Assembly (NCBI GenBank): GCA_047495785.1
Contig: JBLDXI010000045.1
Coordinates: 248,001-312,000 of the forward strand
Source: Lepidodermella squamata
Lineage: Eukaryota > Animalia > Gastrotricha
Direction: 5' to 3'
Length of the DNA stretch: 64,000 nucleotides
Part shown: positions 22,821-49,200 of the stretch, piece by piece
Numbering within the stretch: the first letter of the stretch is position 1
Layout: each line of letters opens with the position of its first letter
The notes under the pieces: generated by a model
Seen by the model: only the letters and a program-made list of their open reading frames with translations
Told to the model about the DNA's origin: nothing
The model's database searches: none
Position numbers and translations under genes: made by a program

Positions 22821-23341
22821 CATTAAAAAATAGCTAAAACATCAGGCGTTCGCAACGAGCCCCGGCTTCTTAGTACGTCTCATTATCTGGGTTGGTTTGA
22901 TTTCTTAACCAAATTATAGATTGTTTCGACGCTCGGTGACACAGCCAACTTCCGAAATTTGTCTTGTAGAAAAGAGAGAGCGAGTAGGAATAGGTATATC
23001 CTTTTAAATTATCATTGCGAGCATCTGGCGAGTATACCGCGTAAAGTTGAACCGATCAATAAGACGTTCCAAGCAGGCAAAGCAGTTTCATTATATTGCA
23101 GGTAAAACTGGCTATAAAGAAACTTCAAAAATCTTATTAATTTCTTCTAAGCATGTTTTTTTTTGCGTTTTAGCCTTTTCACTGCTCTTCAAAATTCGGT
23201 TGGTATTTTTTAATCATGTCAGGTTAACCTATCATTAAAACGACTATCAAAGTTTTGCACCTCAATCTTGCCCAATAAATAAGTGCTTGGGGGTGAATAG
23301 TGCCCTAAAAATTATTTTATTTGGAAAATTTCTGTCCAAAG

Positions 23342-24652
23342 ATGGTGTTAATTTTTCTCATACTATTCGTGACAACTGCTGCAAACCTCCAAGTCGAGGC
23401 TGGATTGAATCAGAAATTGCTAGTAATTTCATTCGACGGATTCCGGCAAAAGTATTTCGACGATGGCCACTATCTACCCTGGTTTTCAAAGTTCAGATCA
23501 GAGGGCGTTTACTCCGATCAGGTCAAAAGCATTTTCCCAAGCGAAACCTTTCCGAATCATTACGCGATCGCGACTGGGATGTTCGCGGAGAGCCACGGAA
23601 TTATCGCGAACACGTTTTACGACCCGAAACTGAAAGCTACATTCAAACAGTTCTCTGTCGAAACCTACTGGTGGAATCAAGCGGAGCCGATATGGATTAC
23701 GGCTCGTAAACAAGGCAAAAGAACTGCTGTTTCTTTCTGGGCAGGTTCAGCCGCAGTGTTTCCGGGCGGATGGACGCCGAACTACCTCGAAAAATTCAAC
23801 CCTAGAGTTAAGTTCGAGAAAAGAATCGACAAGATGGTGGAACACCTCGTTCATGATGACGTCGATCTAGCGATGATTTACCATTTGCAGCCGGACGAAG
23901 ATGGACATACATTTGGCGAAGGGTCCAGTGACGTCAATAGTACCCTGAAAAAGCTCGATAGGCAGCTATCCTATCTCCTAACTCGCCTGGAAGAGGTTGG
24001 TCTCGAAAATCTGAACATAATTTTATGCTCGGATCATGGAATGGTGAATATTACGGAGCGATTGGTGATGAGCGACTTTGTAGACGTGAGGAGACTGATA
24101 AGCAGGGTAGGCATAATTTTAGCCTCTTCTCAAATGTACCTTTGGCAGTTTTAGGTTCCATCTTACGGTGCTATAGTCAACATTCAACCGAAACGAGGTA
24201 AAATCGACCAAGTTTTTTCGGCATTGGAAGAGGCTGTGAAGGCAGGAGCTCCGTTCTCTGTCTACCGTAAAGCTGAAGTTCCGGAATCTTACCACTACTC
24301 AAAAAATGGAAGAATCATGGACATTGTTGTCGTCTGTAACCTTGGAGTTTACATGACACCAGTAAGACAGCCTATGACCAGGATTCCCTGATAATCATTT
24401 TTCCTTAAATAGGGTCCATCTGAATGGGAAATGGCAGGAGCCCACGGCTGGGATCCGTCCGCGTACGAGCTGAGGCCAATCTTTTTGGCGAGAGGACCAG
24501 CTTTCAAAACTGGTGGCTATAGGTCGAAGAAGTCATTCCGAACGAAAGACATTTATGCAATCATGGCACATGTCATCGGCATGGAACCGCTTCAGACAAA
24601 CGCAACTCTGAATAACGCATTGGACATTTTTAAGTCTGAAGAAGATTTATAG
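23342..24652 (+). CDS. Secreted ectonucleotide pyrophosphatase/phosphodiesterase (ENPP4/5/6-like); 3 exons
   Basis: Signal peptide, LLVISFDGFR, FPSETFPNHYAIATG (Thr nucleophile), QPDEDGHTFG, IILCSDHGM, GAHGWD and PIFLARGPAFK. Introns at about 24107-24154 and 24362-24411. Confidence 0.92.
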
Positions 24653-24754: not shown

Positions 24755-27634
24755 TCAATCTACATTCTCAGCCTCACCATCGACAAGGGCATATCTACGA
24801 GTAGATTGTTCCACGTTGATGTAGCAGCACAGCGCAGATGCGCTGCAATTGTTACATAGTCTGACAGGTGACCAGGGAGGTCCTTTGTAATTGTAAGGGC
24901 GCCTTGTTCCGCAAACGACACACTTATCAGCCGAACATTCCGGATGAGTGTTGCATACCAAGGCCGGTTTCATGATATTGCCATAATCTGGTATTCGTGT
25001 TTTGCAAATATAACACATGCCAAGGATTCGGTTATTTAATTCGAAATCATAGACTGTGGCACAAGTGAAGCATGCTGACAGTGGAACAGCTTGGTTAGTG
25101 TTCACGTGACTGATTGGAAAGTTACATCGAAATCTCTGTCGAAAATGACCCATTCAGTCGCATTACAAAAAGTTACAATTACTTACGCTCAAATAAGACC
25201 AATTGTAGCCACCTAGGCCGTACATGCTCAATTTTTTTCGCAAAAAGGCTAAAACTTCTTCCCGCGAGTTAGACTCCCATAGCATTTGAACGATAGTATT
25301 CGACCAGGTTATCATCACATCAGTTGGAGCATGTTGAATAATAAACATGCACAGCTCTCGTTGAGCCTCCATCTTATCTTTGACCTTACGGAAGCAAGCC
25401 TTTGAAGCCGCTCTTATAACAGACAAATGATTCGGGAGAATCACGGATTTTTCACCCATGCCGAAGACAACGTAAGGCTTCATTAGAAGACGTAGCTGAG
25501 TCATCTTCAGTGGAATAACGCGCTCTCCTTTCTCCGGATCGCCAAGAAGCAGCGGCAGGTAAGTATCTGACAATGGCTGCTGGGCAACTGCCAGATAGCG
25601 AAGAAATTTCGAGACAGGAATTTCTGGATTTTCGCGTATCAGCCGATTCAAAATCTGCGTATAAATGTCCAGTAGAGTTGGAGGGAAGTCTCGAATCTTC
25701 GTAGTGACTTGTCGGAAATTTCCGAATACTCTCAACTCCTCACAAGCGAGTCTCAACCACAGTGGCAGGTGTGCTCCGTCTTTCTTAATCAGAGTTTCCA
25801 GCTGCTCTTGATCGAGTCGCTTGGAGTAATCCTCAAAGAACTTGGTTGCTATCGTCGACCTAAGCTCAGGAGGTGCTTCAGGCATCTGAAACAACGTGGC
25901 TTCAGAGACCGTTAAATACTTATGTATCCAGGACTCTTTCGAATTCGAGGCCGTCATTAGGCAGACAAAGTTAGCCGGAAATCGGAAGGGCAGAAAGTCG
26001 AACCAATGAGCTGATGTTGTGTAACCAATATCGCCAATATGTTCAACCCCGTCAAGAAGTAGAACAATTTTTTTATCTGGCCTTAACCTAAGCGCCTCCA
26101 TCTCCTTACATACATGATCCCATGGGTATTCATTGTCATCGTCCCAGATAATATCAAGCTTCTTCGCGGCACCTATTCACAAAATCGAACATGCATCCCC
26201 AATTTATATTGAGATGGATATTCGTACCTTCTTCAGATATACCAAGCAGAAATCGCAGCAGCCTGCGCATAGTCATCGAGTACTTGCTAGACATGTCCGA
26301 TACAGCTATTCCACAGAAGTGGAAAAAGACTTGATACTTTTCCGTTGCAAGTAGTTTTTTAGCTACCATGGACAGCAAGGAAGTTTTACCCTGACCAGGA
26401 CTTGATACGACACAAATAGGGAGATTGGACCAGCCGCTTTCACTCGGATTGGCAGTCGGAGGCCATTTTTCCGCATTTAGAGGGCTGTTACCGCCATCAG
26501 AGAATTCATCCAATGGGAGAATTTTGTCTGAGCCTGTAAAATAACGCATGGCGCGATCGTTGTTATTGAATTTGTCTTCGATGAAAGTCGCCATTTCATC
26601 GGTCCATTCTTCAATGCCATGGGTCAACAAAGAACGCCTCTGAAGATAAGCGGTTTGGTTGTAATCCTCTTGCATAACTTTGTCGGGGGGTTTGAAATCT
26701 GCTCGATCACCAACGAGACGTTCAATTGCTGCTTTGAAGAAAGCTGTAACTCTTACGCCAAATTCGGGATTGAAAGACATTTCCAGCTTTGAATCATCAC
26801 TGCGGTTTGTTTCCATGTCATAGATGTAGAGCTGATCCACAGGATTGGGAACAAATTTAGGTATCTTCGCTTTCAGGCTGGCAAGGTGAGTTTTCTCCAA
26901 GGCGCCTTTGTCAACATAGATATCTTTTTCCTTCTCCGAAAGCTGAGAACTAAAGATAGGATTTCGCAGGCAGAACAAAGCGTTATTGTTGTGACATCTG
27001 AGTAGCAGGTTACTAATTAGTTGATGTTTTAATTTTTTAGAAAAATAGTTCACCTAATAGCACCTTGAAGAATTTCCATGTGAGTGATGGACACGCTTTC
27101 AACCCAATCGTACCTCTGCTGAACATCAGAAGGGATTTCCGAAACCTTCGGTATCCAGCCATATCGATCGCCAAGAAGGCAAAGGAATAAAGGCTTATCG
27201 TTGGTTGATTTCTTGATGACCTCCAACTCTCCTAAGCAAGTCTCAATCGTATCGACACTGGTAGCGTTCTGGGGCACGCCCCAACGTAAGTCGGTCTCAA
27301 CGAGACGAACGCCTCGCTTTTCAGCCCAATCGGATAGCTCAGGAAGGACTGATTTGATGATGTACTCACGTTCAGCATTCATATCTCGGAAAGTTGAGGA
27401 AATGAAAATGTTCATAGTTGTCCAAAGTTGAGATTGGCTTGGTAATTTCGTTGCTCCCTTAACGACCCCGGATACTTCTTTCAGTTTTTCTGCTGGAGAC
27501 GCAGTTTTGTCCGAGGATTGCTTCTTCGATGATAGGCCTGACTCGATTTCTTCCCATGCCTTCTTGACCTGCGCTTCGACCTCTTCATTATTGGCATCCG
27601 CGACACAATTTTTTGGCTGGCAGCAGTGAAACAT
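24755..27634 (-). CDS. DUF4062 + NACHT/STAND NTPase (TEP1/NWD1-like) with a C-terminal Cys-rich Zn module; paralogue A
   Basis: IFISSTFRDMNAEREY, ETDLRWGV and FLCLLGDRYGWIP (DUF4062). Walker A SSPGQGKTSLL, Walker B IVLLLDGVE, and PLWLRLACEELRVFG. Exons 27634-27054, 26997-26228, 26172-25187 and 25135-24755. Confidence 0.88.
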
Positions 27635-28127
27635 TTTGGTGCAATGAAATGTGAGAATCGAATTTCTGGCAGGTAAAACTACACTGTCGTTAGTGCTTCG
27701 ATCAATGCTTCGAGCGATAAAAATGGGTGATATTGCCAACTGTGCCGTTGGTATGTGCGCGCAGCCTCTCATCAATTAATAAAGTGTTTTGCGCGTGAAA
27801 AAATGTGTATCGGTTCTTGAAGCGGAAGGATACTTTTTTAATAGTTTACACAGCCATTTTTTTCAAATGGAGTCATCATGGAGTGATAACTGAAGAGTTA
27901 AATTTTAGAATGAGGCAAACATATGGATCCACGGCATTCATCTATTTCAAGTACCTCGTACCAGATGAATAACTACGGCTGAATATTTGAGCGTGCTAAG
28001 AAAAAACTGACGCATCATTCAGGTTATTCTTTTACTAGAATTTGAGCTATATAAAAATTTTATTCCGATAGCGATTCATAAAAATCATGAGTACAACTTT
28101 TAGGGTAACCTATCAAAACATGGTCTA

Positions 28128-28860
28128 TTATCTTGGTGAGCACTGCACGCAAGGCGAGTTGAGTGGTGGAGGAGTTGTAAGCTGAGATCGATTTACAGGT
28201 GTCGTCGATGTTCCGTCATCTGACATAAATACAATGCCGACTATGAATAGCGGTAGAAATATTAGCACGAAAGCGCCGAGGGAGATCAAGGAGTTGTAGC
28301 CGTCCCAAGTAAGTCCGACAGCCAGGGTGACTATCGCAACGATCGATATAATGGTTACAGCTGTAATGAGCATTATCATCCCTTGATACCGCCTGGCAAC
28401 ATCTTTTTGCACCTCTATCAATTTTTCTACACATTCAATGGAGCATTCAAATATGAAAGAATCGGTTAACTTGGCAAACCTTGCTGCAAGACATCTTGAA
28501 AAGCTGGATCATATTGACAGCATGGTAGCCCTGGAAATCATAATTAGCAAGACAATTTACAATTTACAGTCTATCCACCCTACCTGATTTTTGCGTGGTC
28601 GGGCCGGATTCTATGATTACTTCTCCTTGGAGGGGCTGTAGGTCACGTGAAGCTTCCAGTTCAGCTAATTTAGCAACCTCATCCAATAGAGTTTCCCAAT
28701 CATCATTGGATACCTGAGCTTGAACTAGATTGAGCGTGAATAGACCTGAGATGAGTGAAAAAATGAATAATTGAGAACGTTCCCACGAAATGAGCCGCGA
28801 CCGCTTATTTATACACCTCATTTCATTTAAAAGAACCGTGGTGAAATTGGCTTCCATCAT
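28128..28860 (-). CDS. Orphan membrane protein (signal/anchor segment plus 2 C-terminal TM helices); 3 exons
   Basis: Exons 28860-28584, 28530-28480 and 28426-28128 join in frame through two 53-nt GT-AG introns. Hydrophobic segments LFIFSLISGLFTLNLVQA, MIMLITAVTIISIVAIVTLAVGL and LISLGAFVLIFLPLFIVGIVFM. The exact start ATG is uncertain. Confidence 0.65.
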
Positions 28861-29151
28861 CGGCCGGAAATGCGAGCTCTACCATTTCGTAGAGAAGCAC
28901 TTACACCACATCAAAACAACCGCTTGCAAACAGGGTCTTTACTTTACATGCGCAAGTGTCCTGCTTCGCAAACAAAAGTAGCCGGCAACATAAGCGGTTT
29001 TTTGTGGCACTACTATGACCATGAACGTGAAATTCTTCAGGTTCATGTTACTGTGCTTCAAGTTTCCTTCCATTTCCAACATATCCAACACATACTTGAC
29101 GCATCAATATCAACTTTAACAAAATTTAATAAAATATTTATTGCTTCACTC

Positions 29152-32107
29152 TTACTCGTTTGGGTGGTAATCATTGTTAGCAAATAGGGGGTATCTGAAC
29201 TGTGATTGTTCCACTGACATGTGGCAACAAGACAATGATCTTGAGCACAGCTCGCAAAGTTTCAACGGTACCCATTGGTTGAAAGCTTTCCCACGAAACA
29301 ATCCGCAAATTCTGCATGTGTATTCTCCAACGCCAGCAGGGTATTCGCGATGATTCAAACAAACAGTTGCATCTGATAATCGTGAGCCTGCGGTCACACG
29401 GGTTTTGCATATCCAGCAGAAGTCGCAGTGTCTGCCGTTGAGCTCAAAATCCATCATCATTGAACAAGGCTGGCAAATCCGCAGAGGCACTGACTTGACC
29501 TGGGGAATACCTACTGTGTTGGCACATCGAAATCTCTGCGTTGTATAAAAATTGGTTTAAAATATTTTAAACATTGATTCGAAACTTTACCTGTAAAATG
29601 GCGGCCTTGTAAGCGGTAAGAGCTAACTTTGCCATATGATCATACTGAACGAAGCGTAACAACTCAACTCGACAATCCGATTCCCAGAGTAAATTTGTGA
29701 TGTAGTAAGCCATCCGAATTTTAGAGCTCTCTGAAGCGTAATTCATCAGATAGAATGCCAATTCTCGCTTCGCCGCCATTTTGTCTTCCTTTGTCGGGGT
29801 GCAGGCTTTAATTGCAGCACTAATCACAGCTGAATGGAAGGGCATAATAACCATTCTCTGACCCATGCTGAATACTATGTACGGCTTGAGGACAAGCCGC
29901 AATCTAGCCATTATTATCGGCAGAACGCGTTCGCTGGCCTCCGGATTTCCTAGAAGAAGAGGAAGATCTTCTTCCAACAGAGGTTGAGGAGTAACTGCAA
30001 TGTAGCGAAAGAACTTTCCGATAGGAACCTCCGGGTTATCTTTGATTAGTCTTTCGATAATTTGCATCAAAATGCCATCAAGTGTAGGGGCGAAGCTTCG
30101 AATCTTTGAGTTTAGTTTTTCGAAGCTGCCAAAAACTCGCAATTCTTCGCAGGCTAATTTTAGCCACAATGGCAAATGCGCCCCTTCTTTGCTCACCAGC
30201 TCTTTGAGCTGCTCGGCGTCAAGCTTCTTAGCAAATGATTCGAAGAACTTTTTCGCGATAACTGCACGAAGCTCAATTGGGGCGTCCGGCATTCTGATCA
30301 TCGATGCATCGGCGATGCATAAATATTTGTGGATCCATGCTTCGTGATCTATCGTTGCAGTCATAAGAACAGCGCAGTTCGCAGGGAAGCGAGTTGGAAA
30401 GAAGTTGGAATATCGCACGTCGATTGAGTTGTCGACTTCCAGTATATTTTCAGGCGAGTCAAGCAAAATCAGAATTTTCTTGTCAGGGCGTTTGCTAAGT
30501 TGATTAAGCAAGTCATTCAGCACTTTGGTTTGGTACATCGACCACTCGTCAATAATCTCATTCAATGGCTTTTCTAAACCTGAAATAGCAAGATGTAAGG
30601 CATGTCAAACGGTGTTTCGCAACTTTACCCAGAACATTTGCCAAGAACCAGACGAGCCGTTTTAAGAAAATTTCGTAACTAGTAGCGTTCTCGGATATAG
30701 TCAAGCCAAAATAATGAACGAAGACGTTGATCTCAGCAGATGTCATTATGTGCTTGGCTACTTCAGACAACAACGAAGTCTTTCCTTGCCCTGGCTCCGA
30801 AATGAGACAAATCGGATGCGATTTCCAATCCAATTCGTCAGCGATTGCAACGCTTGGCCACATTGCCGCCTGGTCCTTAGCGGCGTCTTCCGCATCATTA
30901 ACATCGTCGCGGAGCAAAGAGGTGTGCTCGAAATCTCTTAACACCATGCTGCCATTTTCTCCAGTAAAAGAGCCCATGACGTAGGAGGCAAGCTCTTGTG
31001 TCCAGCTATCTACGCCAAAGGTTGACGCACATTGCTTCTCCAAATAACCGAGTTGATTGAAAGTCTCTTGGTCCACGTCATGAGGGGGCGTGAAATCATT
31101 ACGATTATCGTAAAGTCTTTCTATAGCAGCTTTGAAAAACCGAACAATCTTCTCGCCGAACTCAGGTCTAAATTCGATATTCACGGCACTCTCCGATTCG
31201 GTATTATCAGTATTTGCCAGAGTTGCATCGTAGATGTAAACTTGGTCTCTGGGATCAGGAAGGAAAGCCCCAACCTTCTTCTTCAACTTCGCCAAATGCT
31301 TTTGCTCGATTGCACCCTTATCAATAAAGCCTTCGGCTTGTTTATCGGATAGCGAGGCTGAAAACTTGTGATTACGCAAACAGAACAGGGCGTTTCGATT
31401 TCGACATCTGAATCGCAACATAAATCTTGCGTTGACTGTACTAAAATCGGTCACCTTACCTCAAAGCTCCTGAAAGTTCATAGAATTTTTATGAACGGAA
31501 TATGTATAATGTAACAATGCTTACCTTGTAGTATCTCCATGTGTGTAATCGAGAGAGTATCGACCCAATTATAACGCTTCGATATTTCTACCGGAATATC
31601 TCTAATATTGGGAATCCAGCCATATCTATCACCAAGAAGACAAAGAAACAAGGGCTGGCCTTGTGAGTTTCGCTTGATCACCTCGAGTTCCCCTAAACAA
31701 GTCTCGATCGTGTCAACGGTCGTTGAATGCTGCGGAACGCCCCATCGCAAATCAGTTTCGACAAGACGAACGCCTCGCTTTTCCGCCCAGTCTGCCAGCT
31801 CCGGGAGTACTTTCTTAACAATATAATCTCTCTCTGCATTCATATCCCGGAATGTGGATGATATGAATAAATTCGCTGTCGTCCAAACCTTAGCAGCATC
31901 TTTCTTTTGAAGCGCGGGGTTTTTTGTCTCGATTAATACGGCGTTATCGGCTGGTTCTGCAATTGCGGTGATCATTCGTGTGGTGTGATTGCTCAAAAGG
32001 TTTGACTCAATCTTGTGCCATGCTTCTTCAACTACGGTTTCGCTGTTGTCGCTGGTAGCCATTTCAGCAATTTGTTTGTCTAAAATTGGCTTGAATCTGG
32101 CATACAT
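29152..32107 (-). CDS. DUF4062 + NACHT/STAND NTPase with a C-terminal Cys-rich Zn module; paralogue B
   Basis: Same motifs as paralogue A (LFISSTFRDMNAERDY, SEPGQGKTSLL, ILILLDSPE, PLWLKLACEELRVFG). Exons 32107(or 32062)-31525, 31469-31460, 31407-30629, 30579-29591 and 29535-29152. Confidence 0.88.
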
Positions 32108-37255: not shown

Positions 37256-40200
37256 ATGGCCGCGGAGATAATCGATGGTGGTCACCACCACGAGGCCTTC
37301 AACAACGGCGGCGATAGCGGCGGTCGTTGGGAACCTGGTCAAGGCGGCGACGAGGACGAGTTTGACTCGCAGCAAAACTCGGCCAAGCTGTTCGAACGCT
37401 CACGCATCAAAGCCCTCGCAGGTACATTTTATTAAATAATTTTAAGGGGGATTTAATTTTTTTCATTCAAAGGTTTATTATTTTCTTTTCATATTCAAGA
37501 TTTTTATATTCGACCGAATATATGTATAGGGATTATCGCATAGCGTGTTATTATTATTATTATTATTACGAAGTCGTGAAACCGAGCTGCGCCATTACAC
37601 GCATGCATAGGCGTTTCGGCGTTTGATTTTACTCTGCAGTAATAACAGTATACCTTTACGCTCGGCGTCTTAACGGGTTCCGAGGCCGTGTTGTAATAAT
37701 ACGCGTACGCCGGCGCCGATCTCTTGAGCTTGGCCTGTGTGATAAGTGCCTGGTGGTGGAATGTTTGGTCAGCAAATCTTCCATAACATCTCCCGTCCGC
37801 CGCTCCCGAGGTGGATATTACATTGTTCTTCTCGTCTACTATTTACCGCACGCAAGAGTTTCCCGTTCATTATTATTATTATTACTAAGACGCGCCACAA
37901 CAACGTATTAGACGTTCTCTTCAAGCGATTTTGTGGCGCTGCGGAAGCTGCGCGTTCGCTGGTGAAGTTTCGTCCGCAAACAGCTTAGGCGCATCAACAT
38001 TCACTATTACTGGTTGTAGTGGTGGTAGTAGTGAGTTTACCGGATTAGATGAGCCGGTAATATCATTCCGAACTCGCGCGCTGTCTTGCTTGATATGTTG
38101 GCCCGGGTCGAAAACAAACCCGCCGGCGTCTGAAGAATCAACGCGCAATGACAGCGTTCTGTTGTTCATGAATCACTGTTGTGTAGTAGTTATATAGGCA
38201 TAGTAAACCTCGAAACCTATCCACTGCGATGATAATAATAATAATGGGAGAAAAATAATCATAACAACGGCGAAAGAGTATCACTTACGAGGTTGATCTG
38301 GCGACTGCTTGTAATATTGTTTGATTATTATTACTACATTTTTAGTGGGCGTGTTCTAGCGCGCGCGCATATTAACGAGCGTAATCATCATCATCATCAT
38401 CACCTTGATAAAAACTGTGTGTAGTGGTGGGTTTTCACGGCCTAGCTATGTGAACTTAATTGTGATCTCCTAATTGAGCTACGTGCCCCGCATAAAATCC
38501 GATAACGGCCAACTTCCCCTTGCAACACACGTGTTATTATGTTGCTGAAATACTCTGGTATATTTTATTGAGTTTGCATACATTTAAAAGCTGGTGCGAA
38601 TGACCGCTGCAGCAGCCGCCGCCGGTCCATGTGTCTGTCTCTATTGCAATTTAGCTCGTCGTGTTCGCACTTCATTCGCTAGTTCGTTCAGGCATTCACA
38701 TCACCGGCCGAGCGTTGAGTTAGTTATTCATTATTTATTTCCACAACATCGCTGTCGCTCTTACTATAAACTACACACAACTGCTGATGCTATTGTTGTT
38801 GTGGTGAGGCACCGCTCTCTCGCTCTATCCTTCAGCCTGATCGTGACTGATGTTCATTCACCTGGTCGATGATGAGGCGCGACACGTTTCTCTCGAAAAT
38901 TGAGCAAGCGAGTAAAAATCAATTGAAAAGAAATTTAATTAGACAAGGCTGCCTATCGATTGGTTGATTGTTTGTTTTCGCCGCCGTCGCCATCGTATAT
39001 GCGTCTTGCTACAATTTGCAATGCTAATTCTTTGATTGTTGTCCTTATCGATGTTGCGCGCGCGCTCTCTTTAGGCAAACAGCGATAATTATCTTTAAAT
39101 CACAAAAACGATACACTTAATATTGGCGAAAAATTGGTTTCACGACGATGCTGGTAAACAAATGAAAGAAATGAGAAATTTTAAGGTGGAATTTTTATGA
39201 AAAGATTGAAAAAATTAAATGCGTAATTTTTTTGTTGAACAGGCGAGCGCGAAGCTGTTCAAAAGAAGACCTTCACAAAATGGGTGAATTCGCACCTGAT
39301 GAGGGTCGGCAGCCGCATCGAGGACTTGTACGTAGATTTGCGAGATGGCAAACAGTTGCTCAAGCTGCTCGAAGTGCTATCGGGTGAGGCGTTGCCGAAG
39401 CCGACGCGCGGCAAAATGCGCATTCACTGCCTCGAAAACGTCGACAAGGCGCTGACCTTCCTCCAGGAGTGCCGCGTCCACCTCGAAAACTTGGGCGCAC
39501 ACGACATTGTCGACGGGCAGTCGAAACTGACGCTCGGCCTTATTTGGACTATCATCCTGCGTTTCCAGATCCAGGAAATCCAGGTCGATGACTACGACAC
39601 AGCGGAAACGCGCCAAGCGAAAGACGCCCTTCTGCTGTGGTGTCAAATTAAAACTGCCGGCTATCCGAATGTTAACGTTCGCAATTTCACGTCGAGCTGG
39701 CGTGACGGTCTTGCCTTTAACGCGCTGATCCACAAGCACCGAGGCGACCTCATTCAGTACGACAAACTTGCCAAGGCGAACCCGGTCGGCAATTTGAACA
39801 ACGCGTTCAAAGTCGCCGATGAGAAACTGGGCATTCCGAAACTCCTCGACTCTGAGGACGTCAACGTCGAACAGCCAGATGAGAAGTCGATTATGACGTA
39901 TGTCGCCGCTTACTATCACTACTTCTCGAAGACGAAGGCGGAAACTGTCAATGCGAAACGTATTGGCAAGCTCATTGGTCAGGCGATTGATTTCGACAAG
40001 ACCTCAGATGAGTATGAACGCCTTACATCGAACCTCCTGCAGTGGATTGAGCGCAAGGTCGCCGAGTTGAACGAGCGCCGTTTCGAAAACAGCCTACACG
40101 GCGTTCAGCTGCAACTGCAAGACTTTGCCAGCTACCGAACTGCGGAGAAGCCGCCGAAATTTGCGGAAAAGGGCAACTTGGAGGTGATGCTTTTCACGCT

Positions 40201-43200
40201 GCAAAGCCAGATGCGGGCAAATTACCGCCAGCCTTACAAGCCGCCAGATGGTAAGATGATCGCTGATATCAACAAGGCGTGGTCTGTGCTGGAGCGCGCC
40301 GAACACGAGCGAGAATTAGCCCTCCGTGAGGAGTTGATTCGCCAGGAGAAACTCGAACAGCTCGCGACCCGTTTCGACCGAAAAGCGGCGATGCGTGAAA
40401 CTTGGCTGCTCGAAAATCAGCGCCTTGTCTCGCACGATAACTTCGGCAACGACCTGCCGTCAGTCGAAGCCGCCCACAAAAAGCAAGAGGCGATTGAGAC
40501 TGATATCCAGGCGTATGAAGAGCGTGTTCAGGCCGTTGTCCAGGTCGCGGAGGAGCTTGAAAAGGAGAATTTCCACGATATCGAGCGGATCAATTCGCGT
40601 AAAACTAACGTGTTGACCCTGTGGCGATATTTGATGGAGTTGCTGTCGGCTCGGCGCCGTCGCCTCAACATTTCCCACGACTTGCAAAATGTCTTCCAGG
40701 AAATGTCGTACACGCACGATTGGATCAAGGAACTGCGCGAGCAGTTGTCGAGTGAGGAGTACGGCCGGCATTTGGTCGATGTCGAAGACTTGATTCAGAA
40801 GCATAATCTACGCGAGGCCGATGTTGCGGTTTTGGGCGACCGTGTTAACCAGGTCAATCAGAAGGCGCAGCGTTTTATCGACGCAGATTTCCCTGAAGTC
40901 CAGGGTTACTGCCCGGTCGAGCCGGACGCTGTTCGCGGCCGCGTTACCGCCCTCGAAGCCGCCTACGCCGACCTGGTCGCGCTAGCCGCTGAGCGTCGCC
41001 AGAAGTTGCTGGACTCGAAGAAAATGTGGGAGTTTTACTTTGAAATTGCCGACGAAGGCAACTGGATTCGCGAGAAGGAGCAATTGCTGACCTCGCCCGA
41101 TCTAGGCCACGACCTCACCTCAGTCCAACACCTGATCAACAAGCATAAGACCGTCGAAGAGGACATTGACTCGCACAACCTTCACTTCATCGCCGCTGTT
41201 CAAGTTGGCGGGGATTTGATTAAGGGAGGTCACTTCCGCGCGCCTGAAATCCAGTCGCGAATTGTCGAAATTACGGAACAGTGGAAGAAACTGGTTCAGC
41301 TGTCCGCGTTGAGGAAGAAGCGTTTACTGCAGGTTCAGGACTACTACAAGTTCTTCTCAGATGCCGACGACGTCGATGCCTGGATTCTCGACCACATGCG
41401 CCTGGTTTCAAGCGACGACGTGGGCCATGATGATTCATCGGTCCAGGCGTTGATTCGTAAACATCAGGATGTTGCGGATGAAATCGGTCGTTACGCCGCT
41501 CAGGTTAAGAAGATGCACGAACAGGCGGATGCGTTGGATGAGAAGGACAAGCAGTCACGAGAGGTCACCGGCCGTCTCGCTCAAATGGACGATCGCTACG
41601 ACCGGTTGCTGAAAGCAGTCGATGCTCGTAAGGCGCGTCTTCAAGACGCCCAGGCCTTGTACCGCCTGCTCGGCGATGCTGACTGGCTCGACAGCTGGAT
41701 TGCTGAGAAGGAGAAGTTCCTCGGGCAGTTGCAAATGGCGACTGATAGCTATGAAGAGCTTGAAATTATTAAGCACCGATTCGATAGCTTCGAGCAGGAA
41801 TTGGGTGCGACTAAGCCGAAACTGGAGGAGATTAACGGCGTCGCGACCCGTCTGCTCGACTCTGGCCACCCTGACGCTGAGCTGATTCGCCAACGAGTCG
41901 GCCAGCTAGGTGGTCGTTGGAAGCAGCTGCAGGGCCTTGTCGACCGGAAGCGCGACGAAATCGGCGTTACCTACGGTCTTCAATCGTACCAGACCGAGGC
42001 GAAGGAAACCGTCACCTGGATCAAGGGCAAAACCGATTTGGTCCAGTCGACCGACGCCCTGGGCAGTGATTTGAGCTCAGTCATGCAACTGCAGCGGAAG
42101 CTCTCGGGCATGGAGCGAGATATGATTGCTATCGAGCGTAAAGTCCGTTCGCTCGAGAATGAGGCCGATCGCCTGGCTCAGGTGCGCCCGCGAGAGGGTG
42201 AGATCATCCGCTCGCAGCTGCGCCCGGTTCACGAGACGTGGGCCGAGCTGAAGCAGGAATTGCACCTGCGTGACGAGAAACTGTCCGCGACTAAGGAGCT
42301 GCAGAAGTTCTTGCAAAACCTCGATCATTTCCAGCAATGGCTGCAACGCACCCAGACGACCATTGCGAACGAGGATGTTCCTACCTCGCTCACCGAGGCC
42401 GAACAGCTGCTCCAGGTAGGCGTCGAAATTACCTCATTTTTCAACGTGTGACGTTAACTTGTGAAAATGTAAGACCGTTTACAAGCGAATATCGAAGATT
42501 AAAGGGTGTACTAAAGTATGGTAACATTAGCGTGTGACGTTTGAATGCTTAATATCGGACGAGGTATTTCTCCTGGTTAAAGCAAATGTTTGTCGGACCT
42601 GGGCTTTGAGTGATTGCTGCTAATATTTTGCCATCCGTGCTTATTTTTCTGTCTTGATTTTACAGCAACATCAGCAAATCAAGGACGAAATGGACTCGTA
42701 CGAACCAGATTACGAACAAATGATGTCCTACGGCCAGCAATTGGTCAAGGGCAAGGAAGGCGATGTCCAGTACATGTTCTTGCGCGAGGTATTAGTTTCA
42801 AAAATGTCCCTTATTTTGTCTAAATTTTCAATATTCTATAGCGCTTGCAAGCCTTGGAATTCGGCTGGAAGGAGATGCATCAAATGTGGGAGAACCGCCA
42901 GGATCTTCTCTCTCAGGGCCTTCGCCTCCAGATTTTCCTACGCGATGCCAAGCAGGCCGAAGTCTTGCTTAACCAGCAAGAAAACTTCCTCTCTCGCGAG
43001 GAGATTCCGGTAAGATTTACTCAAATTCTCTGGAAATTTTTTCATTTTGTTCTAGAGTGGAAATTTACGTTCATTTATAATTTGAAAAATCAACTAATTT
43101 TTTCCATTTATAATTTTTCCGCACCACCAGGGTGGTATTGCTACCGCTCTATCTGGCCAGGTACAACACCAGGCTTTCAGTTTAAACGCGTATTTGTCAA

Positions 43201-46200
43201 GCACGACCACATTCCTTCCTCAAACCTGCTTGTCCTGAGATAAAACTACCAAAACACGATATTTTTTTGAATGATTTTTTTACTGAGAAATCCTTCTGAA
43301 ATTTTTTGATCTCCCGTGTTTCGACCGGAATGCGGCCTTGAGCCTTTATGGCTGTTCATTTTTTAATGTTTAAGCTTAAGCAAGAAAACTGATACCTCAT
43401 CTATATATATTGCACGACGATTTCTCCTCCCTTGTCATTTTTAGTACTAGATCCTCATCTACCGCCAATTTCTCGAGAGTTGACCTGATTTTAATTGTTC
43501 GTCCATAATTTTTCAGACTTCGACTGATGCGATTGAAAACATGATCAAGCAGCACGATGCTTTCTTGACCACTATGGAGGCTAATGACGATAAAATCAAC
43601 GCTGTTATCGCGTTTTCTGATGAGTTGGTCGCTGAAAATCACTACGACTCAGAACGCATCGCTCGCAAGGCGGCTGCGATCTCTGAAAAACGTCAACTGA
43701 ACCGCCAACGGGGCCAGGAGCAGATGGAACGGTTGAAGGACGCCCTGCACCTGCAGAACTTCATCCAGGAGTGCGACGATTTGCAAGACTGGGTTCAGGA
43801 GAAAATCGTCGTCGCTCAGGACGAAACGTACCGCGATGCCAAGAATCTGCACTCGAAGTTCTTGCGCCATCAAGCGTTCGAAGCCGAAATCAAGGCGAAC
43901 AAAGAGCGTCTGGATAACTTGAAGCGCATCGCTGCTGAAATGGGCGAGGAGAAGCCGGAGTGGCACGCCCAGGTCGACCCGCGCATTCAAGCGTTGGAGA
44001 AGTCGTGGTCCGAGCTCGAGGAGACGAGCCGCGCCAAGGGCCAGCGCCTCTTCGACTCGAACCGCCAGCAGTTGTACCAGCAAAACTGCGACGACGTCGA
44101 AAACTGGCTGCGTGAGATTGAGAAGCAGATGGTCACGACGGAAGAAATCACCGATTTGACCACGGTTAACATCCTGCTTCAGAAGCAGCAGAAGTTCGAG
44201 AACGAACTGGCGGTGAAGCGGTACCAGGTCGAGGATTTGAAGCAACAGGCGAACACGCTGGAGACCGTCATCCCTGATATGGATGAGGAGACGCGTGATT
44301 TGAATGAGCAGCGCCGTCGTGAGGTCGAATCCCGCCTGCGTCAAGTTCTCTCGCCGATGGAAGAGCGGAAAATGTTGCTGGACAAGGCGAAGCGCGTTCA
44401 CCAGTTCCTGCGCGATGTCGAGGATGAGCAGATGTGGATTGAAGAACGCCTGCCTATCGCTCGCAACCCCGACGTCGGAACCAGCCTTCAGACCGTTCTC
44501 GCTCTTTCCAATAAGCATCAGATGCTAGAGCGTGAGGTTGAGAACCACGAGCCTCGCATCACCAGCCTGAGCACGGTTTGCGAGCAGTTGGCCGAGGAGA
44601 ACCATCCCCAGGCTGATGACTTCCAACAGCGTGTCCAGGCCGTGAACGAGCGGTGGGCTGAACTCCTGCGCGCTCTTGCTGATCGCCGCCAACGCCTTCA
44701 TCTCAGCCAAGTCTCGCATCAGGTCAGTCTCTTTTTCATTCACTTGCCTTTCAATCGTTTGCTAGTGAAAATTCAGCTTCTGCAAATTTTCAAATTTTTG
44801 CAGCTATTTATTTTTCCGAAATTGGGACCTTCTCCCATCATTTGACCCCGATTTTGCCGAAAAAATATTAAATTTACCGGAAAATCCCGATAGTAATTGG
44901 TTCGGTAATTTTTCGGTATTTTACCTGGTTAGATCAAATTTTTCCGGAATTTTAAATTACATTGACAAAGCTTCTGATTTTGGACTTTCTGATCCCTTTT
45001 TAGTGTGAATTTTCTTTGTTTGCGGTATTATGGGACTGTATAGTAGAGAGTGCGAACCATTTTTTCTACAAAATATTATCATATAAATAAGAATTTACGG
45101 GGATTTATTGGGTATATCGGAATCAGGAATGGTTGGGATTTATATTGCCAAGTTGTTCTACGTTGTTTACAATTGTTGCCGAATTCTCTGCTTCTTAAGA
45201 GCGAACGATCAAAAAACGCTTAACGAGTGCTCACCGTAGTTAAAATATTCGCTTTATCAAATAACGCTCTCTGATGTCCAGAAAATCGGTCTGTATTTTC
45301 CATCCAAATTTATCCACAATTCTGGAAATTGGATACGAATTTGAATATTTGTAGAATTCCCGGATTTTTATCGATTTTTCCTTTCCCTTGTGCATTTTCT
45401 CGTAATGGTTTCAAAATAACAAATGCCCGAGCCACTGAGGACAAAATGCTGAAACGCATTGTACTCGGCCGAGAGCGGGCTATATTACCGGTCTCCAATC
45501 AATAGAGCGATTTTTCAGAGTCGCGTTTCAATAGTTGCATTGAAACCTATCAAATGCGCATATTGATACATCGTGTTTTCGCCTATTTTCAGTATTTGCA
45601 CGATGCGGACGAAGCCGAGGCGTGGATGTCGGAGCAGGAGCTGACGATGATGTCCGAAGAGCGGCCACGCGACGAAAGCGCCGCGAACAACGCCGTCCGC
45701 AAGCACGCTGCGAACGAGCGCGCCGTCGACGACTTCGCCGAGACGATCCGCTCGCTGGACGAACGCGCGCGCACGCTGGTCGAAGACGGCCACCCCGATG
45801 CCGAGCGCATCACGCCGAAACGCGCGCAGCTGCAACGCGCCTACGCTGCGTTGAAGGAACTGGCCCGCGAGCGCCGCCACAAGATGGACGACATCCTGCG
45901 GCTGTACATGCTGAGCCGCGAGATCGACGACGTCGAGGCGTGGATTGCCGAGCGCGAGGCCGTCGCCGCCAGCCACGAGCTGGGCCAGGACCTCGAGCAC
46001 GTCATGCTGCTCCAGGAGCGTTTCGCTGATTTCGTCCGCGAGACCGAGTCGATTGGCCAGGAGAAGGTGGCTGGTTGCAACGAGATCTGCGACCGGCTCA
46101 TCTCGGCCGGGCACAACGACGCCGCGGCGATCGCTGAGTGGAAGGACGCGATCAACGAGGCGTGGACCGACCTCCTCGAGCTGATGGACACCCGGACGCA

Positions 46201-49200
46201 GCATTTGCAGGTGTCGTACGAGCGCCACAAGTTCCTGCAAGACTGCCGCGATACGCTGCAGCGCATCCAGGAGAAGTCGGCCGCTGTGCCGAATGACGTT
46301 GGCAAGGATGCTAAATCGGCGCAGCTCTACCGCCGTAAGCACGACGCCTTCGTCCACGAGGTTCACGCAATCGAGGCCGAGGTGTTGTCCCTGCAAGAAC
46401 GCGCCGTTGCGTTACTCGCTCAGTACGCCGCTGATAAGGCTGATGAGGTGAAGCAGTGGGAGAAGCAGGTCGTCGACGCGTGGAACGACTTGCAGACCCG
46501 TCTGCGCCAGCGTCAGCTCCAGTTGATGGATGCCGACGATCTGTACCGCTTCTTCAACGTCGCCCGCGACTTGATGCAGTGGATGGAGGAGATTACGAAC
46601 CAGATGACCAAGTCGGAGAAGCCGCGCGACGTGTCCGGCGTCGAGCTGCTCATGTCGAACCACCAGAGCTTGAAGGCGGAGATCGACTCGCGAGACGAGA
46701 ACTTCTACATTTTCAACTCGCTCGGCAAGGACCTGCTCGACCGGCTGCACGCGCGGTCGGGCGAGGTCCGCGAGAAGCTGATGCAGGTCGCTGTTCAGCG
46801 CGGCTTGATGGTCGAGAAGTGGGAGGAGCGCTGGGAGGACTTCCGCATTCTGCTCGAGATCTACAAGTGGGCGCGCGAGGCGTCGCTGGCCGAGGCGTGG
46901 CTCATCGCCAACGAGCCGTACTTGCAGAGCACGGACGTGGGCGACACCCTCGAGGCGGTCGAGAAACTGATTCGCCGGCACGAGGCCTTCGAAAAGTCCG
47001 CGGCGGCGCAGGAGCCGCGTTTCCAGACCGTCAGCCAGATGACGCAGTTCGAAATCCGCGAAAAGCAACGCCGCCAAGAGCAAGAATTCCTCGCCCAACA
47101 CCCCGACGCCACCCTTCCCGGTTCCCGACGGCCTGGTCGTCAACGGTTTATCGAAGATTTCATGCTGGCCCCCAAGTCACAGTAAGTCTATCTTAAAATA
47201 AGTGTAAAATTGGGTGTACCTAGTGAACGCCCTAAATTTAGGGTTTCAGCATTAGTTTTCCCCAAAATATGGTTTTCGCTAAAGTCTCGATTTTTTGATC
47301 ATCGATCGCCGATATCGATTCCAAGTATCGATTTTGCAAATTAGCGATTTTTCCGATATCAACAGTTTTTGAAGCAAAAATTTCTACCTAGCTGATGGTA
47401 TCGGAAAATTTAGTGCAGGAACCTTAACTGTGTGGTGCAAATAATTGGACCCGTCATAATATTCCACCTTAAAATATGCTAATTTGTGTATCTTATCTTG
47501 CAGACCACAAACCGCCTCGCAAAAAGCGGCAACCTCGACGTCGCAAGCGCAATCTCCTGGTGCCCCAGTCGCAGTTGCCACCCCTACCCCGACCACCACC
47601 GAACGGCATGCCGCTCCTTCTGGAGGTAAGAAATTCGCTGAAATACTACGCTACTTTACTCCTATAATTTTAACTATCACTGAACCTACTAGAGCATAGT
47701 CGTACCTTAGCGGTGCACTTTCAAGGTTGGGAGCCTATGAGAAGATACCATTACTTTTCGTGGAGCCCCAACTCATTATTTTTATCATTGAAGTTGTTTG
47801 GCCTTGGAATATTTCAATTGGTTGTGGTGCTTTAAAGCATGCTGTCTTGTTAGCATAATATCGATAATATCATAACAGTAGTTATTTTCCTTGATTTAAT
47901 CAATGTTGCTAATGTCATTATTGTCCGTGTCGTGTTTGACTAAAAGCGGCTGGAGGTAGTTCAGTGGTATCACCGGCTGCTCGGCCAGGATCGAGTCGCC
48001 AGCCGACTTCAAGCTCGTCGTCGTCACCTTTCGGGTCTAAGGACATGCGCGCTAGCGTGCCGGTGCCGCAACCTAAGCGGCCCGTGCAAGCGGCGCCAGC
48101 TCCTTTCAGACCACGCAGTGGTGAGTGTGAAATGAAACGGGGATTTACTGGTCGCTAGCTGGAGGAACGCTGTTGCTTTATTCTTTGAAACTTAGCTGTA
48201 GCTTGCTTTTCCGACTAGTTCTATTTATAGCTTTTAATTCGTAGCTATTATGTGTTTTTTCAAATCATTGTTTTTCCTGTAAAACTATTAGAAGCTTTTC
48301 AGTTTATACTACAACGACCGAGTTTAGCACCTGTGACATCGTTTTGCCTCTTTTTAAAACGAACAAACGTGGTGTTATTAGTTGACGCACCAAACTGACT
48401 TGAATAACTATTAAATGTTATACCTTATTTGAAAAAACGAAACTAAATTCCCCACCTTAATATTTTTATTTCAGATGAAAACTAATACGGTGTGCATGCA
48501 CAATTGCCGTATTATTTTGAAGAAAATGATGATTTTATACACGTTGATTTATATCATGGCAAAGGTGCTTTTCATTTTGGGACATTATGCGCCTTTTGCT
48601 TGCGCTTTATTTACTTGGAATGTTGGTTTTATTCCGATTTTAAACATATTTTTTCTGCGTTTTTGTAGAAGATCGCCCCGCCGAAGGCTACGAAGGCCTC
48701 CTCGTTAAGAAGCATGTCTGGGAGACAGCTGTGAAACGCGCGTCCGGCAGGTATATTTCATTGCCATTTTTTGTCTTTTACTAGAAATAATTTGGATATC
48801 TACTCAAAAACGATGAATCCTAATTTTGGATAATTCTGACTATTTAAAAAAACATTTTCAGAATTTATGAAAATTTATTGATCAATTTTCAAAAATTAAA
48901 ATTAGTTGAAATTGGCCTCATTATAATTTGTATATGAATCGGAACTTGGTTCCGCTACACTGAACTACAAATTTGCAAATTTGGTTTGGCTCTGATATTT
49001 TTGAAAAAGATGAGGTTAATTTATTGAAAATTGAATATAAAATATAATGAATGTTTGATTTTTTTCGAAAAATTAAGCTGGATTTTTTAAATATTAATAT
49101 TAATAATATTTTTTGATGTGTCTTTCAGGAGTTGGGACAAACTCTACGCCGTGCTAAGCGGTTCTTCGCTGAATTTCTACAAGGACCAGAAACATGCAAA

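Follow-up and report, generated by a model that had tools for sequence, protein, structure and literature searches.

Two DUF4062-NACHT genes of the gastrotrich Lepidodermella squamata appear to belong to an ancient animal subfamily with a predicted PHF5-like three-zinc tail

Characterized animal proteins in which a DUF4062 domain (also called TeTIR or NIR) directly precedes a NACHT-type NTPase end in WD40 or TPR repeats, as the initial annotation of the present locus stated and as preprints of 2026 likewise state. What, then, is the small cysteine-rich domain that closes two such genes of the gastrotrich Lepidodermella squamata? The two genes, referred to here as A and B, lie on the minus strand of a 64,000-nucleotide (nt) stretch of contig JBLDXI010000045.1, which we call the window and in whose positions coordinates are given unless another contig is named. 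We propose, with a probability of roughly 0.6, that A and B are paralogues within an ancient animal subfamily of TeTIR/DUF4062-NACHT proteins of the STAND type, in which a basic, PHF5-like three-zinc domain replaces the WD40 or TPR repeats. The parts of the two genes are as follows (aa, amino acids; E, expectation value).

27634 to 24758, minus strand: coding region of gene A, 905 aa in 4 exons, reading frames and GT..AG splice sites being assigned directly on the sequence
27634-27054, 26997-26228, 26172-25187 and 25135-24758, minus strand: exons of gene A
27054 to 27412, minus strand: DUF4062/TeTIR (TIR-like NADase) core of gene A, PF13271, E 5.5e-11
26379 to 26399, minus strand: Walker A motif of gene A, PGQGKTS
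26042 to 26068, minus strand: Walker B motif of gene A, IVLLLDGVE
24758 to 25135, minus strand: last exon of gene A, PHF5-like triple-zinc module, 126 aa
24757-24755, minus strand: stop codon of gene A
32107 to 29155, minus strand: coding region of gene B, 914 aa in 5 exons
32107-31525, 31469-31460, 31407-30629, 30579-29591 and 29535-29155, minus strand: exons of gene B
31525 to 31873, minus strand: DUF4062/TeTIR core of gene B, PF13271, E 1.8e-9, catalytic motifs identical to those of gene A
30774 to 30794, minus strand: Walker A motif of gene B, PGQGKTS
30449 to 30475, minus strand: Walker B motif of gene B, ILILLDSPE
29155 to 29535, minus strand: last exon of gene B, PHF5-like triple-zinc module, 127 aa, the sequence used for modelling
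29154-29152, minus strand: stop codon of gene B

Both genes carry the parts first ascribed to them, namely a DUF4062 domain, a STAND NTPase with Walker A and B motifs, a helical region and a separate last exon of about 125 aa. Their introns measure 49-56 nt and are all canonical (GT..AG), and the reading frames are intact. The start of gene B was placed at 32107 because the N-terminus obtained in this way matches a metagenomic relative, P0001. While the overall structure initially drawn for gene B held, a 10-nt micro-exon at 31460-31469 (minus strand; GAGCTTTGAG), lying between introns of 55 and 52 nt, had been overlooked. Paralogue A has one 56-nt intron where gene B has the micro-exon and its two introns, a difference which, judged from the gene structures, means that one paralogue has gained or the other has lost an intron. 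The DUF4062 domain (PF13271) is encoded in exon 1 and scores 42.9 bits in A and 38.1 bits in B against a Pfam cut-off of 24.7. Matches to the Pfam models NACHT and NPHP3_N remained below threshold in A and B because the NTPase is divided among exons; in L014, an intronless paralogue from the same genome, DUF4062 scored 31.3 bits, NPHP3_N 29.7 bits (cut-off 24.8) and NACHT 22.1 bits. Pfam scans of A, B and L014 revealed no WD40, TPR or other repeat domain. In both genes, the zinc exon opens at a phase-0 intron located immediately ahead of the RFRC motif.

The cysteine-rich frame might conceivably be no part of the NACHT gene, and A and B an artefact or a pair of pseudogenes, a reading that we regard as most improbable. 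Sequencing run X1 was recognized as a complementary DNA (cDNA) library because the ends of its contigs carry SMART-type adapter tails and its depth is zero in intergenic bins. The X1 contigs splice four of the seven introns (introns 1 and 2 of A, introns 3 and 4 of B), and DNA run X2 covers the whole stretch without any of the X1 joints. Joint 29535>29591 connects the zinc exon of gene B to its helical exon, which refutes the artefact for B; in favor of it, the last junction of gene A is absent from the cDNA joints listed. The comparison of cDNA contigs reached window position 30660, and the micro-exon of gene B lies beyond that point. Also speaking against an artefact are the intact frames and canonical splice sites of both genes, the conservation of the intron position in a third paralogue (contig C48), and the single continuous frame found in intronless paralogues and in many orthologues. 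A and B are confirmed as genuine expressed genes, with the zinc tail fused to the NACHT gene. Separately, loose ends of X1 contigs at window positions 28068 and 29152 read ...CTCTGCGTTGATACCACTGC(TT), which is a SMART-type cDNA adapter in reverse complement; for gene B, the position of the end at 29152 points to either a very short 3′ untranslated region or internal priming.

The N-terminal half of the proposal concerns a known type of enzyme. DUF4062 (TeTIR/NIR) has been described as a TIR-like domain that cleaves nicotinamide adenine dinucleotide (NAD) in bacterial defense, and human TEP1 is an active NADase (three preprints of 2026, including 10.64898/2026.05.01.722283 and 10.64898/2026.09.21.753143). 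The NADase residues of TEP1 are F902, S905, R908, R914, R942, W943 (in the RWG loop), C959, R976 and E1008 (10.64898/2026.09.21.753143, 10.64898/2026.05.01.722283). Replacement of most of them with Ala (S905 with Glu) abolishes NADase activity, R908A retaining considerable residual activity and W943A showing a modest reduction (10.64898/2026.09.21.753143). The heads of A and B both display the motifs FISSTFRDMNAER, DLRWG, ETCLGEL, GDRYGW and SITHMEIL, the last of which holds the catalytic-Glu position, and these motifs are invariant in an alignment with the TEP1 protein of this genome and with bacterial members. Kept in both genes are FxSSTFRDxxxER, the RWG loop, the Cys of ETCL, the Arg of GDRYG and the Glu of SITHMEI, which, numbered by motif spacing, would correspond to the NADase residues of TEP1. 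The two heads thereby appear to retain the NADase residues, and may be NADases.

At the other end of the proteins, the ligand strings originally quoted for the two last exons match the sequence exactly, and the order of one ligand, five pairs and one ligand holds in both genes, with CxxH instead of CxxC as the third pair. The terminal CC fared less evenly, its first Cys being invariant throughout the family and its second not. The ligands are:

C783, C801, C804, C820, C823, C840, H843, C851, C854, C873, C876 and C882: ligands of gene A
C791, C808, C811, C827, C830, C846, H849, C861, C864, C881, C884 and C890: ligands of gene B

When 83 modules from diverse metazoans were aligned, exactly 12 columns proved invariant, C, CxxC, CxxC, CxxH, CxxC, CxxC and C, which in the numbering of the paralogue B module are C4, C21, C24, C40, C43, C59, H62, C74, C77, C94, C97 and C103. 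The two ligands of a pair are always separated by two residues, and the spacers between pairs are variable. These 11 Cys and one His would fit three zinc sites. By analogy with PHF5A, and in the same numbering, putative site Zn1 is likely formed by C21xxC24 and C74xxC77, putative site Zn2 by C40xxC43 and C94xxC97, and putative site Zn3 by C59xxH62 together with the lone C4 and C103. Over the non-ligand columns of the module, pairwise identity averages 17%, compared to 59% for the DUF4062 core, and modules are 27% identical to each other; across animals, no other part of the protein is as poorly conserved as the non-ligand positions of the module. Set against this low background, the 12 fixed columns are not a product of chance. 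The domain is basic; its net charge over the 83 sequences is +8.4 ± 2.9.

This ligand order had been likened to that of the spliceosomal protein PHF5A/Rds3. PHF5A folds as a left-handed deep trefoil knot that binds three zinc ions through five CXXC motifs permuted between fingers, motifs 1 and 4 forming ZnF1, motifs 2 and 5 forming ZnF2, and motif 3 plus two lone Cys forming ZnF3; in 2017, the only structural relative of it that the authors found in the PDB was Rds3 (Teng et al., PMC5458519). Modelling of the B module by AlphaFold2 with the 83-sequence alignment gave a mean predicted local distance difference test score (pLDDT) of 88.8 and a predicted template modelling score of 0.78, the five models ranging from 87.9 to 88.8 in pLDDT. 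With an alignment of five sequences, pLDDT dropped to 47 and the model was unusable, and since confidence rose in this manner with the number of sequences, the model appears driven by the signal of the alignment and not by the Cys pattern alone. Foldseek comparison of the model with the PDB placed PHF5A or Rds3 at all of ranks 1-16 (7onb_D, 7q4p_G, 5syb, 6en4_D, 5ife_D, 5gm6_J, 2k0a and others), with E values of 0.06-2.5, template modelling (TM) scores of 0.32-0.41 by query and 0.39-0.56 by target, and 100-123 alignment columns. From rank 17 onward came FYVE, RING, LIM and PHD entries with TM scores of at most 0.21 by query; RING, LIM, PHD, FYVE and B-box readings of the module were ruled out on fold by this search, and C1 gave no global fold match either. 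Of the two outcomes named beforehand as refutations, a fold of the LIM, RING, PHD or B-box kind and a last exon left unspliced, neither was thus observed, the splicing having been seen in gene B. A structure search of the ESM Atlas returned a PHF5 cluster as its top row, with TM scores of 0.42 and 0.45. With two aligners and in three libraries alike, the best match was PHF5A/Rds3, clearly ahead of the next, and the alignments followed almost the entire PHF5A chain in sequential order.

The tail could nonetheless be an independently evolved triple-zinc domain, such as one made of interleaved zinc ribbons or knuckles, in which the PHF5A ligand order is convergent and which AlphaFold2 drew toward the sole fold known to it with that layout. 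We deem such convergence unlikely, though far from negligible. Ranking by two aligners over three libraries and the dependence of model confidence on a deep alignment both argue against it, as does a profile comparison with hhalign. A PHF5 reference alignment was assembled from 80 fetched metagenome loci, of which 28 distinct full-length sequences were kept. Compared with it, the module alignment gave a probability of 52%, a P value of 1.4e-4 and a score of 27.5 over 61 columns, in a register that sets C40xxC43 on C30xxC33 of PHF5A, C59xxH62 on C46xxC49, C74xxC77 on C58xxC61, C94xxC97 on C72xxC75 and C103 on C85. None of 100 shuffles in which the Cys were held fixed reached this score (14.8 ± 3.1, maximum 24.3), nor did any of 100 full column shuffles (11.4 ± 2.4), and the reversed PHF5 alignment scored 14.8. 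Other sequence comparisons were less telling. A shallow profile compared to a single PHF5A exon yielded a probability of 4.7%. The Pfam model PF03660 matched 11 of the 83 modules at E values up to 10 (best 5.8e-4), none of the 83 above the gathering score and neither A nor B at all, and RING, C1 and double-zinc-ribbon models matched modules at similar levels. PDB sequence searches with both module profiles did not list PHF5A, returning a chance radical-SAM match and weak C1-domain matches. Identity to PHF5A in the structural alignments was 15-21%, and the 12 ligands over about 77 aligned residues alone would provide about 16%. Similarity in sequence between the module and PHF5 thus exceeds the bare ligand pattern, yet stays below proof of common descent. 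With moderate confidence, the module is predicted to adopt a PHF5-like three-zinc fold; it may also share the trefoil knot of PHF5A and descend from a common ancestor with it.

How far does this architecture extend? A profile built from five local modules found only three matches among 1.84 billion representatives, a word-index search with the L014 module alone gave no match, and a feature search of the ESM Atlas produced scores all below 0.8 and no lead. One of these three matches to the module profile, P0002 (2,668 aa; E 3e-16 over 36 stretches), was rejected as a false positive made of low-complexity repeats (CYTCNTTLPLPG) with recurring CxxC. Because the local profile is divergent, it missed a wider family that was revealed by searches with the whole proteins P0001 and P0006, which recovered proteins of about 820-960 aa with the zinc tail in many animal groups. 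P0001 itself (932 aa) has DUF4062, NTPase and zinc module in one open frame. The zinc ligand pattern was present in 74 of the 109 newly listed matches to P0006, the others being truncated isoforms, partial sequences or members of a TPR-type paralogue family of about 1,020-1,050 aa. Carriers include, among protostomes, molluscs (oysters among them), Lingula, the nemertean Tubulanus and the nematode Plectus; among deuterostomes, crinoids, starfish, urchins, brittle stars, Branchiostoma, frogs (Xenopus), salamanders and lamprey; and, among non-bilaterians, Hydra, corals, anemones and Trichoplax. The suggestion that this might be an undescribed class was partly borne out: the 2026 preprints on DUF4062/TeTIR/NIR mention neither zinc nor PHF5 and describe the C-terminal part as WD40 or TPR, and none of the papers searched links PHF5 and NACHT in the sense of a fused tail, but the class is not local to this animal, its members being present animal-wide in databases under automatic names such as "telomerase protein component 1-like", "TPR repeat-containing protein DDB_G0287407-like" and "NWD2-like". 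As a side observation, P0143 from Lottia gigantea (991 aa) seems to have, within residues ~838-985, an extra partial first-half module ahead of a complete one, explained perhaps by duplication within the gene or by a faulty gene model.

Phylogenetic relationships were examined with the N-terminal 620 residues, module excluded, in a quick tree search with midpoint rooting and Shimodaira-Hasegawa-like approximate likelihood ratio test (SH-aLRT) values as the only support. All 33 module carriers fell on one side of a branch with an SH-aLRT of 96. The neighbor of this clade is the main animal TPR-type group, TEP1 and bacterial members lying farther away. Separate groups inside it are formed by vertebrates, by cnidarians, by amphioxus with echinoderms, and by lophotrochozoans; A and B are sisters, joined next by P0001 and then by the C17 paralogue, and the module proteins of this genome fall among protostomes, near the nemertean and the nematode. 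On this tree, which broadly follows animal groups, the module carriers appear to represent an old, mostly low-copy animal orthogroup, and the fusion seems to date back to the base of animals and to have been inherited vertically.

That history bears on one idea raised at the outset, that the tail is an integrated decoy mimicking PHF5A, such that pathogen factors targeting the spliceosome would trip the receptor. Integrated decoys are established in plant NLRs, and the resemblance in fold to PHF5A is what such a decoy would call for. The module, however, has in common with PHF5A almost nothing but its ligands, and PHF5A itself is highly conserved (fetched matches being 81-97% identical to the copy of this genome, against the 27% that modules share with each other), for which reason we hold a decoy to be very unlikely. 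Tyr36, a drug-resistance site of PHF5A, is not kept in the hhalign alignment, and an origin of the fusion at the base of animals with vertical inheritance likewise speaks against mimicry.

A search of the L. squamata genome (121 Mb, 151 contigs) identified five loci with the zinc module: A, B, the paralogue on C48, and a pair on C17 and C59. The C17 and C59 paralogues encode DUF4062, NTPase, helical arm and module in a single intronless frame of 857 aa, and the lack of introns suggests a retrocopy origin. Their zinc modules are identical and their flanking DNA is different; they look like homeologous or allelic copies. The sixth DUF4062 locus of the genome is a canonical TEP1 with TROVE, DUF4062, NACHT and WD40, and a separate, normal PHF5A gene is present.

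C17:2051434-2054007 (L014:935-3508): intronless paralogue L014, with a partner copy on C59 near 278400-281000
C17:2795538-2802268 (L017:39-6769): canonical TEP1, with TROVE in a 616-aa frame and DUF4062, NACHT and WD40 propellers in the following 1,627-aa frame

Between A and B, identity is 76% in DUF4062, 39% in the zinc module, 41% in the NTPase core and 42% in the linker. The head is highly conserved between the paralogues, as originally claimed, but the zinc module proves no more divergent than the NTPase core or the linker. Synonymous sites are saturated between A and B (proportion of synonymous differences, 0.72-0.86), so that the ratio of nonsynonymous to synonymous substitution rates is uninterpretable and provides no test of a diversifying sensor. 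By the same comparison, A and B would be old duplicates.

Around the two genes, other features were noted. The pair is not strictly adjacent, because a small expressed two-exon gene sits between A and B at window positions 28128-28860 (minus strand); its cDNA joint 28426>28480 skips 53 nt, and its short product has hydrophobic, membrane-like stretches and belongs to no Pfam family. A multi-exon gene of the ENPP nucleotide pyrophosphatase/phosphodiesterase type at 23321-24652 (plus strand; PF01663, E 7.5e-65) lies tail-to-tail with gene A, its end about 100 nt from the stop codon of A. ENPP enzymes cleave NAD-related nucleotides among their substrates; in a eukaryote, this proximity is probably a coincidence. 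Farther along, window positions 40001-48000 have a GC content of 0.50-0.55, compared to about 0.40-0.46 in the rest of the window.

How might such a protein work? The analogy of TEP1 and other STAND proteins suggests that the NTPase would be kept in a closed state by the zinc domain together with the helical arm. Nucleotide exchange and oligomerization would become possible once the zinc domain binds a cue, for which a polyanion like nucleic acid is the most plausible candidate and a protein partner the alternative, and the oligomers would gather the N-terminal TIR-like domains and thereby switch on NAD+ hydrolysis. The sensor role of the module, the nature of its cue and its binding of nucleic acid are all suggested by this analogy. 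It may be, alternatively, that the tail has a PHF5-like fold and senses no ligand, serving as a constitutive anchor or scaffold, for instance on RNA or chromatin, on a HEAT or beta-propeller partner or on the protein itself, with activation controlled elsewhere. This is a credible if somewhat unlikely view, with which the strongly basic character of the module and the housekeeping-like, mostly low-copy family whose tree broadly follows animal groups both agree, as does the fact that PHF5A is itself a scaffold contacting SF3B1, SF3B3, SF3B5, U2 snRNA and intron RNA (PMC5458519). Apart from its ligands, though, the module evolves faster than any other part of the protein. In STAND proteins that have been studied, moreover, the C-terminal domain is usually a sensor or an autoinhibitor, which also runs counter to a constitutive scaffold.

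Several facts weigh against the assignment of A and B to a subfamily of NADase-headed STAND proteins with a PHF5-like tail. In vitro, the human proteins NWD1, NWD2 and NPHP3 showed no activity at full length; the catalytic Glu is present in the first two and missing from NPHP3 (2026 preprints). PHF5A structures were part of the AlphaFold2 training data, and the spacer from the first to the second CxxC counts 9-18 residues in the modules versus 3 in PHF5A. The knot, zinc geometry and ligand pairing are putative and would be those of PHF5A by homology. Finally, low copy number and a species-like tree fit a conserved cellular role equally as well as an immune receptor.

Should A and B indeed form part of a three-zinc subfamily, they would define a third class of tail among TeTIR-NACHT proteins, phylogenetically coherent and spanning Placozoa, Cnidaria, amphibians and lamprey, at a time when DUF4062/TeTIR/NIR has been known as an NADase effector only since 2026 and animal sensors were then described as WD40 or TPR. 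The module would be the first PHF5A/Rds3 fold outside the spliceosome and, as a candidate sensor, is small enough for tractable study. The boldest version of the proposal, which we consider doubtful, is that, at the base of the animal tree, the knotted PHF5A fold became joined to a STAND switch with a TIR-like NADase and acts there as a danger sensor related to nucleic acids or the spliceosome; if true, it would amount to an animal-wide, NAD-depleting cell-death or stress receptor lost in amniotes or mammals. Orthologues in Xenopus, Hydra, oyster and amphioxus make STAND-controlled NAD+ depletion beyond SARM1 and TEP1 directly testable in animals, and the family is relevant to research on STAND/NLR and NADase immunity as well as on zinc-knot folds.

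Compared to known systems, the A/B family most resembles TEP1, NWD1, NWD2, TTC41 and NPHP3, with which it shares an N-terminal DUF4062/TeTIR domain followed at once by a NACHT-type NTPase and then a helical arm and, in the case of TEP1, the catalytic Glu along with the RWG loop and the remaining NADase residues. In contrast to these proteins, its members are short (about 820-960 aa), form a clade of their own and end in one three-zinc domain, about 100-125 residues long, with no WD40 or TPR, a tail that none of the five human members given in the preprint carries. PHF5A stands alone as a 110-aa protein, whereas the module forms the C-terminal domain of proteins about 900 aa long. In its third pair the module has one His where PHF5A has Cys; its spacers are longer, and it is 17-20% identical to a protein otherwise so highly conserved. 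The proposed tripartite plan, in which a STAND NTPase stands between an NADase-type effector and a C-terminal domain for recognition and activation comes by induced proximity, is that of plant TNLs and of bacterial Avs and NLR-like proteins; plant TNLs have an NB-ARC NTPase, whereas A and B have NACHT, and where the sensors of those systems are LRR, TPR, WD40 or HEAT repeats or large terminase- or portal-binding domains, A and B carry a small zinc domain.

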